DNA of 63,986 nucleotides, filler included, from Reticulomyxa filosa (taxonomy: Eukaryota; Protista; Foraminifera): NCBI GenBank assembly GCA_000512085.1. It is 19 parts of 19 records of this genome, joined end to end, with 100 filler letters (N's around TTAATTAATTAA, not from the genome) between each part and the next. Parts side by side here need not be neighbours in the genome. Positions count along the whole stretch, not along the records: positions 11,751 to 19,951 come from ASPP01007398.1; 18 more parts are not named here. One strand, written 5' to 3'. Positions 11,848 through 20,473 of the stretch are shown one piece after another. The notes beneath the pieces were generated by a model that had not been told where the DNA came from, ran no database searches, and saw only the letters and a list, made by a program, of their open reading frames with translations. Numbering within the stretch: the first letter of the stretch is position 1; the number at the start of each line of letters is the position of its first letter. The position numbers and the translations under genes are program-made.

Positions 11848-12498
11848 CTCTTGAAAATGCAACGTTTGAAGTGCGGTTCTTAGAAGATTACATGACAATG
11901 AAAACAGTAAAGAAAATTCTTTCGGCGTCCACAAAGATAATCCATTTTAGTGGGTACGGGGTGCCCAATGCATTGGCGTTTGAAAACGAAGAGCAATTTG
12001 GCATTGTCCAAAAGCTGCCTTTCACACAATTGGACGACCGTTTCTTCTCGTTGGACAAGTCGCTGACGTTAGAGCTGATATTTATCAGCACGTCTCACAG
12101 TCTTGCCAATGGGCAAGCATTTGTCCAAGCCGGTGCAAAGCACGTGGTGTGTATAAGTCCGGACGATCCAATTTTGGATAAATCCGTCCACGTGTTTATC
12201 TATCAGTTTTATTTTAATATTGTTGCCGGAAAAACGATTCAAGAAGTTCTTTTTTTGTAAAAAAAACAAAATAAAACATTACGTAACCAACTCTTTTTTT
12301 TTTTTGAGTGAGTTAAAAAAAAAAAAATGAATAAATAAATAAATAAAAGGCATTTGATATTGGTCGGCAAGTATTGAAAACAGACTTTGGAAACGAAAAA
12401 ATGGGAGAAAAGTGCTGGCTGTTGCCGGAAGAAAAGGTGCATAATGTGGTATTGTTTCCACAGACATTGACAGGTAATCTGAACAAGTGCGTGCCACA

Positions 12499-12530
<32 letters not shown>

Positions 12531-13766
12531 TAGAATGGAATAAGCCTCATTTGAGACGTGAAGACAGTCTGAACGTGAGCACCAGCATGACAATAAACGC
12601 GAATGACAATGACACGTGCAATGGAGGGAAGGTGAGTAAGCTGATCGATTGTAGTAAAAAAAAAGGGACTCACTCGTTCGATCGTCCGTCGGACTTGTGG
12701 ATCGGTCGACAAGTGGAGATGTTTGAATTGCTGGAGTCAATCTGCGATGGGTTGTCGAAGAAGAAGAAGTGCTCGGTGGTAATGGGCGAGAAAGGGATGG
12801 GCAAGTCGGCATTGGTGAATCAGGTGTTTGAATATGTGTGGGAAAGACGAATGTTCGAAGGGATTGTTTTGATCGACGTATTCAAACTCTGGCAAGAGAA
12901 AAAGAGTCAGAGCATCGCGGAAGTGATCAGTGATCAATTGCGCGAGGCGAATATGAAGATTAGCAAATGTTACACGAATAAAGAATTGGTGAGAGAATTG
13001 AAAGGACGAAGAATATTACTTGGAATTGAAAATATTGATAGTTATTATGTCCCATATTCGGGACAACGAATGGATGAATGTTTATATCGACTGTGGCAAC
13101 AAAAGACAATTTCAATTGTAGTGACAACAAGTACCAATCATTTTCAAAAGAGATATGAATATATGCCTATGTTACAGTTGATCCCTCAGCGCGTCATTGT
13201 ATTGAAGCCACTATCGGACTCCCAAATGGCTCAAATCTTTACACTGCAGATCCAAAAGACCCATCACAAGCCTATTTTGCAACAAATGGGAAACGACAAG
13301 ATCGAGAAATTGGCTCGGGATTGCAAAGGTGTCCCGGAACTTGTTCACTACGCCCTGTTTGTTTGTACACAAAAGGACATAGCCGTTGACCGCTACAAAG
13401 TGACCAATTTTACCAGAGTTCTCATTGACAACGTCGCCGAATACAGACAATCATTGGACAAGTGGCAATACTTTGTCCCTCTTCACGACATTCGGCCTTT
13501 GCTCACTCCTCAACAACTTCAACACAAGATTCAAGATAAACACGCTCGCGAATTTTGGGTGAAAAAGTTTCAATATAATCCCATTGGCGATTGGCCGACA
13601 ATTGCTACTTTCATTCAAACCAAATACAAACAAAGGGTCGGTCACAAATACTATAAACTCCGACCTTTGGACATTCTGTCTCCACTTTCTCTCGACTTTC
13701 AATTCTTTGTTCAGGACCTATTTCCTGACTTTGCTGAGGAAGCTCGTGTCAACTTTTCATCCTTCC

Positions 13767-13799
<33 letters not shown>

Positions 13800-14642
13800 T
13801 CTCTGCTTCCTCGAAAGAAAACAAAGAACCCAAAAAAACAAAAGGCTTTTTGGATTGGCTCAAGCCCACAAAACCACATGCGTCGAATCAACATATTGAT
13901 ACCACGGACAACCACGAAGACAGTAACAGCAAAAATGAAATTTCCACCACTTACGATCGCTCTTCAATATTGAACCTTCCCGACACCAATGACTTGAAAA
14001 CGTGCACCGATGTGGACCAAAAACATACAAATGACATAATCGATAACAGTCACCACTTTTTACGTGATTCCATCGCTGTGGAAATCTTTGGTCTGTTCAT
14101 TGACTATTTCAACAATCTTTTAGATTGCATCTTACTTCCTGAAATCGCACCCTTTTATTTTCGAAATGATCTCACTTTGATCGCCGGAATGATTCCAATT
14201 GCAAAGGCTTTCGATTATCTTTGTGACAAAGTAAGTTTACATATATATATATATATAAATAATACATTGTTTTTTTTTTTTTTCATTAATTTGTTGACTT
14301 TGTTTTGTCGTTTTAAAGAAACAGAATTGGAATATCAAACCTGGCACTTGTTTATTTCGTTTTAGTCGAAAAAGTGGGTCATCTTTGGTTTTAATGTTTA
14401 CGCAAAAAATGGAACACAAAGAGTATTTGCAAATCGAACAACGGAAAATTCAAATACACAAACAACAAGGCAAAGCCTTTTTTGAACTCATTAACCCTGA
14501 TTGCGACGTTCCCAGATCCTCTTTATATGATATTGTGCAAGATGTCGAAGAGCTTCAATTCCTACTTCATTTCAAAAATAACACCACGGTTGACCTTATT
14601 CCAAGACAACAAATCCTGGAGCTTTTTGGGAGTTATCAGTAA
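11848..14642 (+). CDS. Pseudo-CHAT (caspase-like) + STAND/NB-ARC-type P-loop NTPase + STAT-type SH2 protein, 5'-partial
   Basis: Exons 11848-12245, 12350-14230 and 14319 (or 14325)-14642 join in frame. CHAT motifs IIHFSGYG..LAFE..LIFISTSHS..AFVQAGAKHVV; Walker A GEKGMGKS; Walker B ILLGIENID; GxP (CKGVP); SH2 IAGMIPIAKAFDYL..PGTCLFRFSRK. Confidence 0.8.
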
Positions 14643-15189
14643 TTTAACAACCGTTTTTTTTTTATCACAACATTGTTTTTTTTATTTTTATTTTTTTTTT
14701 GGTTGCATGTTTTCTTAGTCGTTATTTTTTTTTCTTGTGTTTATTTGTTTGTTTGTGTCGTATCGGTTTGATTTTTCTTTTTTTAGTCATTTTTGCTGTT
14801 GTTGTCTTTTTTTTGTCCAAAGTTTTGCTTGTAAGAGACAAAAAGAACATTTAAAAAAACCTTACATTTTTTTTTATGTTTGTTTAGGTTGTTTGTTCCA
14901 TTTTTAATTTTTTTGTTTGTAATTTTTTTCGGGTGTCTATTGTTGTGTTGATGATTGATATTGTGCAAAACCTTTTTTAAGAACATGTCTTTTGACAGCT
15001 ATTTCTAGTTACAAAAACGCTGACAATTTTCATTCGCGTTTTTGTCTCAAGCTTAGAAAAAAGTCAATATAAATATTGACATGTCTATTCTTTTGAATAA
15101 AGCAAATGAGCGACTAATCGAATGTTTTCTGAGTTTTGAGCACTAGATAGTGTGTTGCGACTTGTGTGGCTTTCACAAAAAGCAAATTC

Positions 15190-15514
15190 AACATATAAAA
15201 AACTTTAAAAAAAATAACGACCAAATTTATATAAAAGGCAATTCAAAATTTGATTGATAGTTAGTGGTCTATACAACATGATTTTTTTTTCAAACTGTAT
15301 TTTCTAAATTTATCGCATTTCATACTGCACTCGATCTAAATGTATGTGAAAAAGTACTTACACTAACTCAAAAATCAACATTTTTTCAAATGTTTGTTTA
15401 GTATCTAGGGATATTCAAGTGTTTCAAAATGCATTTAATTTTTTTCTACAATTTTTTGTTAATACCATTTATATAAATTTGGTCGTTATTTTTTTATAAT
15501 TTTTTTTTACAGTG
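15190..15514. mobile_element. MITE-like element with long inverted repeats and a CACTG terminus (CACTA/CMC-like)
   Basis: Perfect 28-bp inverted repeat at 15208-15235 / 15468-15495. The right end reads CACTGTAAAAAA on the minus strand; the left end is degenerate. Confidence 0.6.
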
Positions 15515-16747
15515 TAAAAAGTATAATAAATTTGTCAATAAACATTTTTGTTGATTTTTGTATTGACTCAATGTTGGCTTTTTTCATATTCTAAATTCTC
15601 TTTTCCAAACAATGACAAAAAAAAAGGCAAGTGGCACATAAACCAGTCTAAACAAGCTTAACATGCTTTCACACCGGACAGTTGACAGACGTAGTAACAG
15701 TATGCGACAGACACATGTTGTATGTCTAATCCACATGACAAGTACGTGATAGTCTAACTTGGTAGTACTGACTCACAAGACACTTATTCGTTAATACCTT
15801 TTTGAAATAATACAAAACATCTTTTTTACATTTGTATGTTTTGGACATAGCAAGCAATATCAAGTTATTTTTCATACTCACTTAATTTTTGGGTTCACGA
15901 CCTTCCTAAAAAGAAAAAAAGTCTTTACTTAAGTTTAAGTTAAAAAATTTGCAACATTTGTTTGGGACTCTATTATATTATCAAATAAACTATGCAATTA
16001 TCTGCGAATAATTTTATTATATGATGAGTAAATAACATTACAACGATAGTCATAATTATCGTTTTAATCAAAACTTTACACAATGTACATGATTTCAAGC
16101 TTATTGAATCATTGAATTTGTTTGTTACTTTTCATAGATTATGTAAACATACTGTAACAGCATTTTTTAATTTCTTTCTTTGTCTCTTTTTCTTTTTTTG
16201 AAAAGATTATACACTCTGATATCCAGATGCCATAAAAAATGTCAAATCTTTGTCGATCTGTCATTGAACTAGTTCTTTTCTTTCCTTGGTGTCTCAAATT
16301 GATAAAAAACAATGCCAAGGAAATGTAATAAAATTGGCCTGAAATAAAAAATTATATACGTTTTGAGTTGAAAAGAAAATTAGATATAATCGAAAAAATA
16401 TTATTAAAATATACGTTTCATAAATTTCTTTTTTGTATTGTCTATATGTTTTATTATTTCCCATTCATCGTGCCTTTATCCAAAATGAATAAATTCAAAA
16501 AATTGTTGAATATCTTGTTTGGAAACTTAAAAACGTTTGCATTGATATTTTGCCGTCTTCTTACGAAAATTACATTTTTTATTTGACAAGTACAAGTCAC
16601 ATTTAAAATTAAAAGGCCAGCAACGCCAAAAACGAAGTACTTAAAGAAGGGGTCAATAGGAATAACTTGCTCAAAACAATTCTTTAATAATTTTCAGTTG
16701 CTTAAAAAAAAAGATTATTGCCATATAAGGCAACTCATTAATTTCTG

Positions 16748-18718
16748 ATGTCACGCCAGCTCTATAATTTTGACAAAGGGGTAAGATAGCGGAAGGGTAT
16801 AGTTTGAAAAGAAAAGAAAGCTCCTTCTTTTAATCGCAAATTTTATTTTTTTTAAAAAATAATAATAACAAATGTGTATAGGTACGTATCGAAAAGGATA
16901 CAATGGGTGAAGTGAAAGTACCAGCAGATCGTCTCTGGGGTGCTCAAACTCAGCGTTCATTGGAGAACTTTGACATAGGACAGCCGCAGTTTCAAATGCC
17001 AACTGCGATGATCCGTGCATTTGGAGTTTTGAAAAAAGCATGTGCAGTAGCGAACTACAAATTGCAAAACCTTCCAAAAGACATCCACGACAGTATTGTC
17101 ACAGCGTGTGATGAAATAATTGCAGGGAAATGGGACAAAGAGTTTCCGTTGTCAATATTCCAAACCGGAAGTGGAACACAATCGAATATGAACGCCAATG
17201 AGGTGATTTCGAATCGAAGCATCCAATTGATGGGAGGAGTGATTGGCAGTAAAGTACCGGTCCATCCGAACGATCACGTCAACCGAAGTGCCAGTAGCAA
17301 TGATACTTTCCCGAGTGTTATGCACATCGCTGTCGCCATGGATTGCGTTAACAAATTGTTTCCAAGTTTGAGCAAGCTGATTCAAGCCTTGAAACAGAAA
17401 GAAACGGAATTTTCTAAAATTATTAAAATGGGGCGAACCCATTTGATGGACGCTACACCATTGACTCTGGGGCAAGAATTTTCTGGGTTATGTGCGTTCC
17501 TTACACACATATATTACATTACATATACAATATATACAATATATAAATATATATATATTTATTTATTGTGTATATGTATACATATATTATCTTATAACCA
17601 ATGTTGTATACAATATAAAGTCTCTATTTGTATGTATAATATTCATTTATCTGTTATTTTAAATTTTATTTTTCAATCGTCTTATTGTTTTTTTTTTTTT
17701 TGAGGAAAGCTATGTGGCACAATTGGAAAATGGAGCAAGTCGCATAAAACAGTCCTTACCTCGAATCTATGAATTAGCGCAAGGTGGGACGGCCGTAGGT
17801 ACGGGATTGAACACGATTGAAGGATTTGATGTCGCTGTCGCGAAAGAAGTGGCGGTGATGACGGGTCTGCCATTTATTTCTGGCAAGAACAAATTCGAGC
17901 TGTTGGCATCGCATGACAGCCTTGTGGACCTTAGTGGGACCTTAAACACTCTTAGTGTTTCTTTAATGAAAATTGCAAACGATATTCGATTGCTTGGTAA
18001 TTTGCTTTTTACATTTGTTTGTCAAATTATTATTATTATTATCATTATTTTTCTTTCCTCTCTTGTTTCACAATAATTACTTTTTTTTTGCGTGTGTGTG
18101 TGTGTGAAAGGGAGTGGTCCTCGAGGTGGCATTAACGAGCTGTTGCTACCAGAAAACGAACCAGGCTCAAGCATCATGCCCGGGAAGGTCAATCCTACTC
18201 AATGTGAATCATTGACAATGGTTTGTGCCCAAGTAATGGGCAATCACATCGCTGTTACCATTGGCGGCAGCAATGGGCATTTTGAATTAAATGTATTCAA
18301 GCCTCTTATTGTCAGTAATGTGTTAAATAGCATCCAATTGTTGGCCGACGCTATGAACTCATTTACCGACAATTGCGTTGTTGGAATTCAACCCAACAAA
18401 AATAAAATTGCCGAGTATGTGCATACGAGTCTGATGTTGGTCACCGCTTTGAATCCACACATTGGATATGACAGTTAACACTAGATTCCAAAAAACAAAA
18501 AAAAAATGCAAATACAAATTACACAAACAAATTGCAACTGACACCACAACTTCTTACTATTGTTCAAACGTTGTTCAGATGCAGCAAAGATTGCAAAGAA
18601 AGCACATGAAGAAGGGACAACACTTAAAGAGGCCGCAGTGGCTCTGGGCTTATTAACTGAGGATGAGTTTGATTCGTTTGTACGACCAGAACAAATGATT
18701 GGACCATCAAAGCTTTGA
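16748..18718 (+). CDS. fumC: Class II fumarate hydratase with C-terminal SKL
   Basis: Exons 16748-16780, 16882-17486, 17710-17996, 18111-18473 and 18579-18718. Motifs [42 protein letters not shown] and [15 protein letters not shown]; ends MIGPSKL*. Confidence 0.96.
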
Positions 18719-19257
18719 TACATAGTGGACTGAATACTTTATGCACATCTTTTTCTCTTGTGGGTTAATTTACACTACAAACCGCAGCTATTTTTGATAC
18801 CATTGTGAACCAACACTCCTCCCTTTCCCTCTCTTCATACACTCACACTATCTTGTGCAGTGTTTGCAGTGCAAAATGCGCAAGCGTAATAGCAGAAAAC
18901 AACACTATATGCCTAAATATTGTTTTCAATGGCTTTCACATTTAAAAAATGATACCATTCATTGAATAACAATTTCCTTAAAAATCTTGCCAAAAAATAT
19001 TTTGAACCACAAAATAAAAAACTGGTTTCAATCACTTTTTTTTTTTTTAAGAAAACAAGCGGATTTGTTCCTTGTTTCTAAACTTTCAGAAACTTTTCTA
19101 ATTATCTAAAAAAGTCATTGTTTGTCGAGATGCAATCTTTGCCTGAGTTAAGTAGTTTTATTTGATAATTTGTTGTCTTTGATTAAACAAAGTTCACGGG
19201 AGGGCTGAACTTTTTTTGTTCACTTTGTTCTCGCGAGTTCGCAAATTCAAGCAAATA

Positions 19258-19710
19258 ATGTCTTTTGAGGGCTCAGAATCCGAAAATGACGGTCCACAGG
19301 AAGAAGCAAAGCGAAAATCTGGACAATATCAAATGGACGACAATGATTTCAGTGATGAAGAAGACAAACCAAAGAAAGTGCAATCAGCCAAAACAAAAGC
19401 GTGGAACAAATTGCAATTGCACAGCATTGACCTCGTTAACCATGCAAAAAACCATCAATTTATTGACTGTCGTGAAGACTTAGCTCAAATCAACAATTTA
19501 CTCAAAGTGCCACAGCACGCCAAATACTTTGATGGAGTCATTTTTCCGAAGTGGTTTGTGAAGCACGTCGGTAACACTTTGCAAGATATCCAGAACTTTG
19601 GCAAAGAAGAGTCAGAAAAATTGATTAAAGAGGAAGGATTGGAATTGAAAAAATTGAAGCGAACTGACCTGTTTAAATTTGGTGCTGAGCAAATTGAATT
19701 GTTCCGAAAA
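19258..19710 (+). CDS. eIF3 subunit c-like N-terminal region, first exon (3'-partial)
   Basis: Acidic N-terminus followed by SDEEDKPKKVQSAKTKAWNKL...FPKWFVK, matching the eIF3c/NIP1 'RVVRSAKDKRFEEL...PRFYIR' pattern. Probable GT donor near 19711. Confidence 0.65.
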
Positions 19711-20473
19711 GTTGAGTTTTTAAGATTGAGATTAAGTTCACCAAATTTTTTTTTTGTTTCCCTCCCCCCTTTTTTTTTTTTTTTCCTTTGTGCCAAAATG
19801 AAAGACAGAGACACAAAAACTTGAACTTTTTGTGACCCTCCCCTTATAATTGAACGTCTTTTTTTAACCTCGGTTTTTTTTTTTTTTTTTTAAAAAAAAA
19901 AAGAAGAGGTTATAAAAGAGTCATGGGACCCAAGAGGGAAGGAAAATTAAGNNNNNNNNNNNNNNNNNNNNNNNNNNNNNNNNNNNNNNNNNNNNTTAAT
20001 TAATTAANNNNNNNNNNNNNNNNNNNNNNNNNNNNNNNNNNNNNNNNNNNNAAAAATCATATTTTTGATCAACATAGGAAAAACTTATCATAAAACCAAT
20101 TTCATATTTAAAAACTACAAGATTAGTAGATATTTTTTTTAAAAATTAGGTTTAAATCTTTATTTTTCATGGAGAAAATCGATTCTCTTTATATAGTGCC
20201 ATTTAGGTATGGCAGTTTTTTTTGCAATCTAATGTAGTAGCAAATCGGCAAATAAAAAAAGTTTTTAAACAAAAAATATTTTGTAAGAAAAAAGAAAAAA
20301 TATAATGAAAACGTATATCAATTTTTTGATCATTGACAAAAAAAAAGTATAAATTTATTCAAATAATATCTTCATCAGTCGGGCAAATGATAAGTACATC
20401 AGTCGGCCCAATGGACAAGACAAAATCTCAACAGTCTGTCCAGTGGATAAGGCCCAGCAAATCAACAAATAAT

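Follow-up and report, generated by a model that had tools for sequence, protein, structure and literature searches.

STAND/NLR ATPases are viewed as switches that repeat-type sensors control, and SH2 domains are viewed as phosphotyrosine (pTyr) readers that are expanded in animals and amoebozoans. In bacteria and cyanobacteria, CHAT proteins often occur in fusion with, or next to, STAND/AAA ATPases. The gene described here, from the foraminiferan Reticulomyxa filosa (assembly GCA_000512085.1), appears to unite the three modules in one product. It runs off the 5' edge of contig ASPP01007398.1 (8,201 bp), which occupies positions 11751-19951 of the window, i.e., of the whole 63,986-nucleotide stretch of DNA (filler included) that was analyzed and along which all positions without a contig handle are counted. 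The contig carries RFI_09927, and exon 2 of the gene is 100% identical to the deposited RFI_09927 protein (P0001, 873 amino acids), which is labeled “NACHT domain-containing protein.” RFI_09927 is a nuclear gene of R. filosa that is mis-modeled in the public annotation.

The encoded protein very probably consists of half a CHAT domain, seemingly dead, followed by a NACHT ATPase, a helical linker with an insert, and a C-terminal SH2 domain. The best overall explanation, to which we assign a probability of roughly 0.55, is a CHAT-NACHT-SH2 product in which STAND oligomerization would be gated by a phosphopeptide.

Domain architecture

Three exons splice in frame to encode this domain order (Table 1). 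The same exons, a pseudo-CHAT domain, a STAND ATPase, and an SH2 domain retaining its conserved Arg had been proposed in a first-pass annotation made from the sequence alone; these proposals stand, and every motif it quoted is present in the translations (WIGRQVE, GEKGMGKS, ILLGIENID, VVTTS, VLKPLS, CKGVP, REFWVKKF, DWPTI, EIFGLF, IAGMI, and PGTCLFRFS). GC content is 36 to 42% in the three exons. The junction between exons 1 and 2 (…AGKTIQE|AFDIGRQ…), which is also used in the deposited model, restores a continuous bacterial CHAT sequence (…AFGKSVQNAFEQGK…; ...VQNAFEQG...). Exon 2 then encodes, in order, the end of CHAT, a low-complexity spacer with Thr10, NACHT, helical domains, the linker, the disordered insert, and helix alphaA of SH2. 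The protein terminates with the SH2 domain, because GC content drops to 25 to 30% beyond 14642 and no further exon-like stretch follows. At its 5' end the gene is truncated by the contig edge, since exon 1 opens mid-codon and its match to the CHAT profile starts at position 126 of 289.

Table 1. Features of the R. filosa CHAT-NACHT-SH2 gene, in window coordinates
Feature	Position	Strand	Description
Upstream intron, 3' end	11751-11847	+	15.5% GC; ends cAG (acceptor 11845-11847)
Exon 1	11848-12245	+	Complete codons from 11850; C-terminal half of CHAT, predicted inactive
Intron 1	12246-12349	+	104 nt; GTTCTT...AAAG; 16.3% GC versus 42% in adjoining exons
Exon 2	12350-14230	+	627 amino acids, single open reading frame; end of CHAT to alphaA of SH2
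NACHT NTPase core	12773-13240	+	Pfam NACHT, E = 7.7e-08, 32.8 bits versus cut-off 26.7; exon 2 residues 142-297
Walker A	12785-12808	+	GEKGMGKS; conserved in paralog L001
Walker B-like, acidic	13013-13039	+	ILLGIENID; LLGIENID conserved in paralog L001
Helical linker	13526-13663	+	AREFWVKKFQYNPIGDWPTIATFI...; weak likeness to first half of Cbl EF-hand-like domain
Disordered low-complexity insert	13760-14075	+	~105 residues; His10; K-rich FLxW motif; single Tyr at 13952-13954 (TTYDRS)
SH2, N-terminal part	14177-14230	+	LIAGMIPIAKAFDYLCDK; helix alphaA; aligns with P0002 residues modeled as helix 57-64
Intron 2	14231-14318	+	88 nt; GTAAGT...TTTTAAAG; phase 0; 15.9% GC; interrupts SH2 domain
Exon 3	14319-14642	+	Coding to 14639, stop 14640-14642; SH2 from betaB to C terminus
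betaB5 Arg	14358-14360	+	Within GTCLFRFSRK; fifth residue of betaB (TCLFRF)

The central NTPase passes the Pfam cut-offs for both NACHT and NB-ARC (24.4 bits versus 23.5 for the latter) and, by these matches, is a NACHT-type STAND. Exon 2 is 43% identical to a paralog on a second contig (L001, positions 46-1332), in which the other NTPase blocks pointed out in the first-pass annotation are kept alongside the Walker motifs. The sensor-1 position is occupied by Ser in the present gene and by Asp in the equivalent L001 segment (VVVTMDT); should this alignment hold, the module may be impaired in ATP hydrolysis and may function as a binding switch. No LRR, WD40, TPR, or ankyrin repeat, i.e., none of the C-terminal repeat sensors by which an NLR is strictly defined, was found in a Pfam scan of exons 2 and 3. 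Among models of bacterial defense NACHT proteins, PADLOC gave no match and NCBIfam gave just weak P-loop matches (E = 2.9e-4, 19.9 bits versus a cut-off of 370). Matches of exon 2 to PDB sequences were rejected as low-complexity noise and as His-tag matches produced by the His10 run.

Two trinucleotide runs in exon 2 are perfect, (ACG)10 encoding Thr10 at 12500-12529 and (CAT)10 encoding His10 at 13769-13798. Both lie in disordered spacers and are missing from the paralogs.

The CHAT assignment draws on several searches of the half domain that remains on the contig. Exon 1 matches profile positions 126 to 256 of the 289 in Pfam CHAT at 17.6 bits (E = 0.0028; cut-off, 24), and a language-model feature search of the ESM Atlas places it with CHAT clusters at 0.93. 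A tblastn search found two bacterial plasmid proteins of ~30% identity, both of which pass the Pfam CHAT cut-off; exon 1 had no match among PDB sequences. In the alignment with these two proteins, the catalytic His is replaced by Tyr at 11955-11957 (IIHFSGYG here versus IIHFSGHG in both), and the catalytic Cys is replaced by Ser at 12093-12095 (STSHS versus N(N/A)C(F/Y)S). As both catalytic residues are replaced, the domain is predicted to be inactive and the label “pseudo-CHAT” is justified.

The nearest bacterial CHAT found is encoded on a Cytobacillus oceanisediminis plasmid (NZ_CP062791.1; L004, positions 1-1914), directly 3' of a ~4.9-kb gene for an “ATP-binding protein.” This pair of CHAT and ATPase in trans echoes the R. 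filosa fusion.

SH2 domain

The fold of the C-terminal domain was modeled with AlphaFold (AF2) on the intronless paralog P0002 (residues 118-292), using an alignment of exon pieces from the other family members. In the model, the predicted local distance difference test (pLDDT) score is 70 to 89 over a block of residues 56-172, which are arranged as alphaA-betaB-betaC-betaD-(betaE-betaF)-alphaB, followed by a hairpin and a helix. Three structural searches matched it to SH2 domains only. In Foldseek against PDB, all of the top 50 matches are SH2 domains (probability 0.92 to 1.0; E values from 2e-3; template modeling [TM] score by target 0.5 to 0.6). VIA-align, which is independent of Foldseek and was run against 48,161 representative chains, likewise placed SH2 domains in each of its top 50 positions, with 11 chains at Z ≥ 8 and SOCS1 as the best match (Z 9.4; root mean square deviation [rmsd], 2.8 Å over 110 residues). 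The ESM Atlas shape search returned SH2-containing families in all of its rows. On this model, the C-terminal domain is confirmed as an SH2 fold that retains the betaB5 Arg.

Across the four paralogs, the longest stretch of the domain without variation is GTCLxRFSRK, which spans the phosphate-binding strand and the first part of the BC loop and holds the betaB5 Arg, the betaB7 Ser, and a pair of basic residues in that loop. Exon 3 itself was placed with SH2 clusters only (0.80 to 0.85) by the language-model feature search, which serves as a lead only. Its matches to PDB sequences were limited to a weak U-box likeness (E > 0.2), dismissed as chance. Cofolding of the exon 2 tail and exon 3, each as its own chain, scored 0.01, a result that speaks neither for nor against SH2.

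In SH2 domains of the STAT type, betaD and alphaB are connected by a helix, alphaB', instead of by betaE/betaF (PMC6895964). The P0002 model has strands at this place (residues 118-124 and 129-132), and the domain looks Src-type rather than STAT-type, as far as a model built on a shallow alignment can be followed.

Linker and disordered insert

The first-pass annotation had likened the linker and SH2 domain to STAT and SHK-type modules, and this part of it found little support: in addition to the Src-type betaE/betaF-like strands, the linker has a sub-threshold match to Pfam Cbl_N2, and its profile found neither Cbl nor STAT in PDB (the only match was a REDY-like protein, E = 0.16). The Cbl_N2 match has an E value of 0.019 within the whole of exon 2 and of 0.0029 when the linker is excised (18.6 bits; cut-off, 22), and two of the three paralogs also match. 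A fold of linker plus SH2 from paralog P0004 (residues 1-398) was unusable, with a mean pLDDT of 44.7. The possible resemblance of the R. filosa protein to a STAT/Cbl-type combination of linker and SH2 is weak and serves as a lead only.

The insert that splits the linker has a pLDDT of <40 in the equivalent region of the paralog models. It is unconserved save for the K-rich FLxW motif and the single Tyr, which has Ser/Thr at +3 and falls into one alignment column in all four paralogs (TTYDRS, DKYSQS, KTYNAS, and GSYSPT). Since aligners tend to match a lone aromatic residue in low-complexity sequence, the apparent conservation of this Tyr is suggestive only.

Proposed mechanism

In the phosphopeptide-gated CHAT-NACHT-SH2 product that we favor, the SH2 domain would bind a phosphorylated peptide, most likely one carrying phosphotyrosine, situated either on another protein or at the single conserved Tyr of its own disordered insert. 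This binding would gate the nucleotide-dependent oligomerization for which STAND ATPases are known. The role of the dead CHAT domain would be that of a scaffold or decoy and not of a protease; it could, e.g., recruit an active caspase-like enzyme or block it. The parts of this proposal differ in strength: the chances that the SH2 domain binds phosphopeptides, as predicted, are about even, and gating of STAND oligomerization by the SH2 domain is a tentative suggestion that may well prove wrong.

Several observations weigh against the proposal. The N terminus lies off the contig, and the real effector may be encoded upstream. In the NTPase, the segment VVTTSTN (13118-13138) seems to lack the T(S/T)R sensor-1 Arg that is usual in NACHT and NB-ARC domains. 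The SH2 domain is unseen by Pfam, both in exon 3 (at E ≤ 1) and in paralogs P0002 to P0004 (at E ≤ 10), and a profile of the family found nothing in PDB. The SH2 fold itself comes from a paralog that is 42 to 53% identical, modeled with a four-member alignment, and not from the gene's own spliced product. Within alphaA, the canonical alphaA2 Arg is out of register, a conserved Lys/Arg standing one or two positions later. Finally, a sensor role for the C-terminal domain would be drawn by analogy from other STAND proteins and is conjecture, as is the guard or immune-switch role that the first-pass annotation had envisaged.

Some of these points would also fit an SH2 fold that is not a pTyr reader. 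Spt6-type SH2 domains bind phosphoserine/phosphothreonine or unphosphorylated partners, and the R. filosa domain might likewise recognize such ligands, or act in dimerization or docking, within a STAND scaffold that has no connection with tyrosine phosphorylation. Its high divergence, with no Pfam SH2 match, and the alphaA2 Arg outside the canonical register are in keeping with this, as is the presence of the Spt6 SH2 domain among the structural matches (Z 7.0). Most of the documented SH2-based pTyr signaling is, moreover, from Amorphea (PMC4758236 for Amoebozoa), and no paper on pTyr-SH2 signaling in Foraminifera was found. However, the part of the domain that is best conserved is precisely the phosphate-binding strand and loop, with the betaB5 Arg, the betaB7 Ser, and the two basic BC-loop residues, and the structures closest to it are SH2 domains of the classical pTyr-binding kind (SOCS1, RasGAP, SAP, and the Src family). 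We consider a function unconnected with pTyr unlikely, though deserving of serious weight.

A more specific version of the favored phosphopeptide-gated product is an NLR-like switch under the control of phosphorylation. In this version, a tyrosine kinase would mark the Tyr of TTYDRS or a guarded partner, and the SH2 domain would engage the pTyr, thereby controlling NACHT oligomerization and clustering of the dead CHAT domain. The SH2-pTyr contact could be made in trans, as in STAT dimers, or in cis, where it would form an autoinhibitory latch of the kind found in Src. In this full detail the proposal is speculative and rather improbable. If true, it would mean that a STAND ATPase has SH2-pTyr logic built directly into it, in a rhizarian that is distant from the lineages known for SH2 signaling.

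Paralog family

An exhaustive phmmer search with exon 3 against 1.84 billion representative sequences retrieved three true relatives, RFI_17052, RFI_29692, and RFI_12626 (E values of 3.6e-17 to 2e-06), and no relative outside R. filosa at E ≤ 0.001. Another candidate, P0005 (E = 4e-5, in four 26-residue stretches), was rejected as a tandem-repeat protein that matches just “...PGT..F....S.” Word-based homolog searches with exon 2, the C-terminal region, and CHAT found the gene itself only; they missed the 43%-identical paralog and are thus uninformative on family size. The NACHT-linker-SH2 body is present at three or more R. filosa loci, and a fourth contig opens inside the insert.

On L001 (25-2497), the annotation splits one paralog in two, a 446-amino-acid NACHT protein and, immediately downstream of it, RFI_17052, which comprises the tail of the linker and the SH2 domain. 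A GTTTTT donor follows …ATEAR (1333), the acceptor lies at 1585 (...AACAG), and the halves join in frame as …EAR|VEFEYHHQDF…, in parallel with RFI_12626. The intron so defined (at about 1333-1585) contains a run of ~40 G, possibly an assembly artifact.

The family could be decaying or nonfunctional, a set of lineage-specific, repeat-ridden pseudogenes or misassemblies whose string of domains has no current role. The contigs are fragmentary, and all four loci are incomplete or mis-modeled; coding trinucleotide runs (Thr10 and His10) and a poly-G run in the intron of one paralog are present, and both catalytic CHAT residues are gone. Against this, the four paralogs retain open frames across every exon at just ~40 to 55% identity, there is no variation in the Walker motifs or the SH2 core, and conservation extends to intron positions and splice signals. 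The retention of frames, motifs, and introns in paralogs this diverged points to purifying selection and makes decay very unlikely.

Gene model

The SH2 domain is intact only if intron 2 is removed. Left unspliced at 14231-14318, the frame hits a stop at 14363-14365 and the protein would end at 14365, as had been pointed out in the first-pass annotation. The deposited model instead translates from 14231 into a 16%-GC stretch (…CDKVSLHIYIYINNTLFFFFFINLL…) and regains the frame by a 25-nt intron at 14350-14374, thereby losing “PGTCLFRFSRKS.” The same codon boundary carries an intron in two paralogs, at 1078-1204 of L002 and 510-596 of L003, placed after …(S/G)K and before K(E/Q)…. The L001 paralog has no intron there, and a continuous 879-nt open reading frame (ORF) at 1619-2497 runs through …GKKQGTNTKPGTCLFRFSRK… and reads …AMDYVSGKKQGTNTKPGTCLFRFSRKKG… at the junction. 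The spliced exon ends of the present gene, …AFDYLCDK|KQNWNIKPGTCLFRFSRKSG…, align with this ORF residue for residue. Because of its intron-like GC content, the shared intron position in L002 and L003, and the intronless L001 ORF, 14231-14318 is supported by comparative evidence as an intron, most of which the deposited model would be wrong to read as coding.

That the deposited model is nevertheless correct, with a coding region from 14231, a mini-intron of 25 nt, and an SH2 domain that is not intact, has its standing as the public annotation (P0001) in its favor and is scarcely credible: the supposed coding stretch has the 16% GC of the other introns versus ~40% in exons and encodes ...VSLHIYIYINNTLFFFFFINLL..., which destroys a motif invariant in the paralogs, the 25-nt intron is 4 to 9 times shorter than the six other introns on the contig (88 to 223 nt), and the intronless L001 ORF agrees residue for residue with the GTAAGT...AAAG splice.

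Genomic context

The NACHT-SH2 gene is followed on its 3' side by a gene for a class II fumarate hydratase and then by the start of an eIF3c-like gene. As both the fumarase and the eIF3c-like neighbor are eukaryotic and share the same intron style, the surroundings of the gene are ordinary nuclear DNA. The fumarase gene (16903-18718, +) has four exons, with Lyase_1 matches of 184.6, 79.5, and 58.8 bits. The three introns are AT-rich (100 to 223 nt), have the donors GTTATG, GTAATT, and GTTAAC, and end in AAAG or CAG; they were taken as the local reference for R. filosa splice signals. Further downstream, an ORF at 19258-19750 (+) begins with MSFEGSESEND... and matches eIF-3c_N below the cut-off (E = 6e-4, 18.7 bits). 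It is probably the 5' end of a gene for eIF3 subunit c that enters an intron or leaves the contig.

Within the intergenic DNA between the NACHT-SH2 and fumarase genes, which has 20 to 28% GC, GC content rises to 36% at 15551-15850. This segment holds just minus-strand ORFs of ~50 amino acids and has no RNA family or tRNA match. Rfam and tRNA scans of the whole piece found no RNA families or tRNAs.

Implications and comparison with known systems

No paper on NACHT-SH2 proteins in Reticulomyxa or Rhizaria was found, within an incomplete coverage of the literature. A search for Reticulomyxa with NACHT likewise found no paper, and papers naming both Reticulomyxa and SH2 leave the two unconnected. 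As far as was found, the modules are known and their combination and lineage may be undescribed. Sequence divergence and an incorrect gene model have kept the architecture from view. Censuses of protist SH2 and NLR proteins that rely on deposited proteins and profiles are likely to undercount for the same kind of reason, since the SH2 domain is invisible to Pfam and mis-spliced and one paralog is split into two models. A NACHT-SH2 family in a foraminiferan would place SH2-type recognition in Rhizaria and would offer a natural case in which a posttranslational mark, and not a repeat-bound ligand, could gate NLR-type assembly.

The best structural matches of the SH2 domain are classical pTyr SH2 domains, namely, SOCS1 (6c7y/6c5x), p120RasGAP (8dgq), SAP (1ka6), and the Src family, with Z scores of 8.6 to 9.4 and rmsd values of 2.1 to 2.9 Å over 91 to 110 residues. 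The betaB5 Arg, the betaB7 Ser, and betaE/betaF-like strands are common to both. The R. filosa family differs in its low identity to these domains (9 to 21%), in the extra C-terminal hairpin and helix, and in the basic residue of alphaA, which is out of register.

A helical segment directly before SH2 is shared with STAT and Cbl modules, including Dictyostelium STAT (1uur/1uus), and STAT rows have the longest structural coverage (TM score of 0.55 over residues 9-172 in the Atlas search; Z of 7.8 to 7.9 in VIA-align). The superposition on STAT nevertheless has an rmsd of >7 Å in VIA-align, and the helices concerned have a pLDDT of <50. Unlike in STAT and Cbl, the R. filosa linker is split by the disordered insert and is accompanied by no DNA-binding, coiled-coil, or RING part. 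The Cbl_N2 match, moreover, is under the cut-off and absent from one paralog.

At the other end of the protein, the likeness is to bacterial and cyanobacterial CHAT domains: IIHFSG.G ... FY.AI.AGK aligns over ~110 residues at 26 to 28% identity with proteins of Cytobacillus and Calothrix. In contrast to bacterial CHAT, the R. filosa domain has Tyr and Ser for the catalytic pair and is encoded in a spliced eukaryotic gene.

The overall plan is that of the NACHT/NLR STANDs of animals, fungi, and bacteria, with a central NACHT that passes its Pfam cut-off and a tripartite order in which a death- or protease-related domain at the N terminus is followed by the NTPase and a C-terminal binding domain. 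Where NLRs carry a repeat sensor, however, the R. filosa protein ends in a single SH2 domain.

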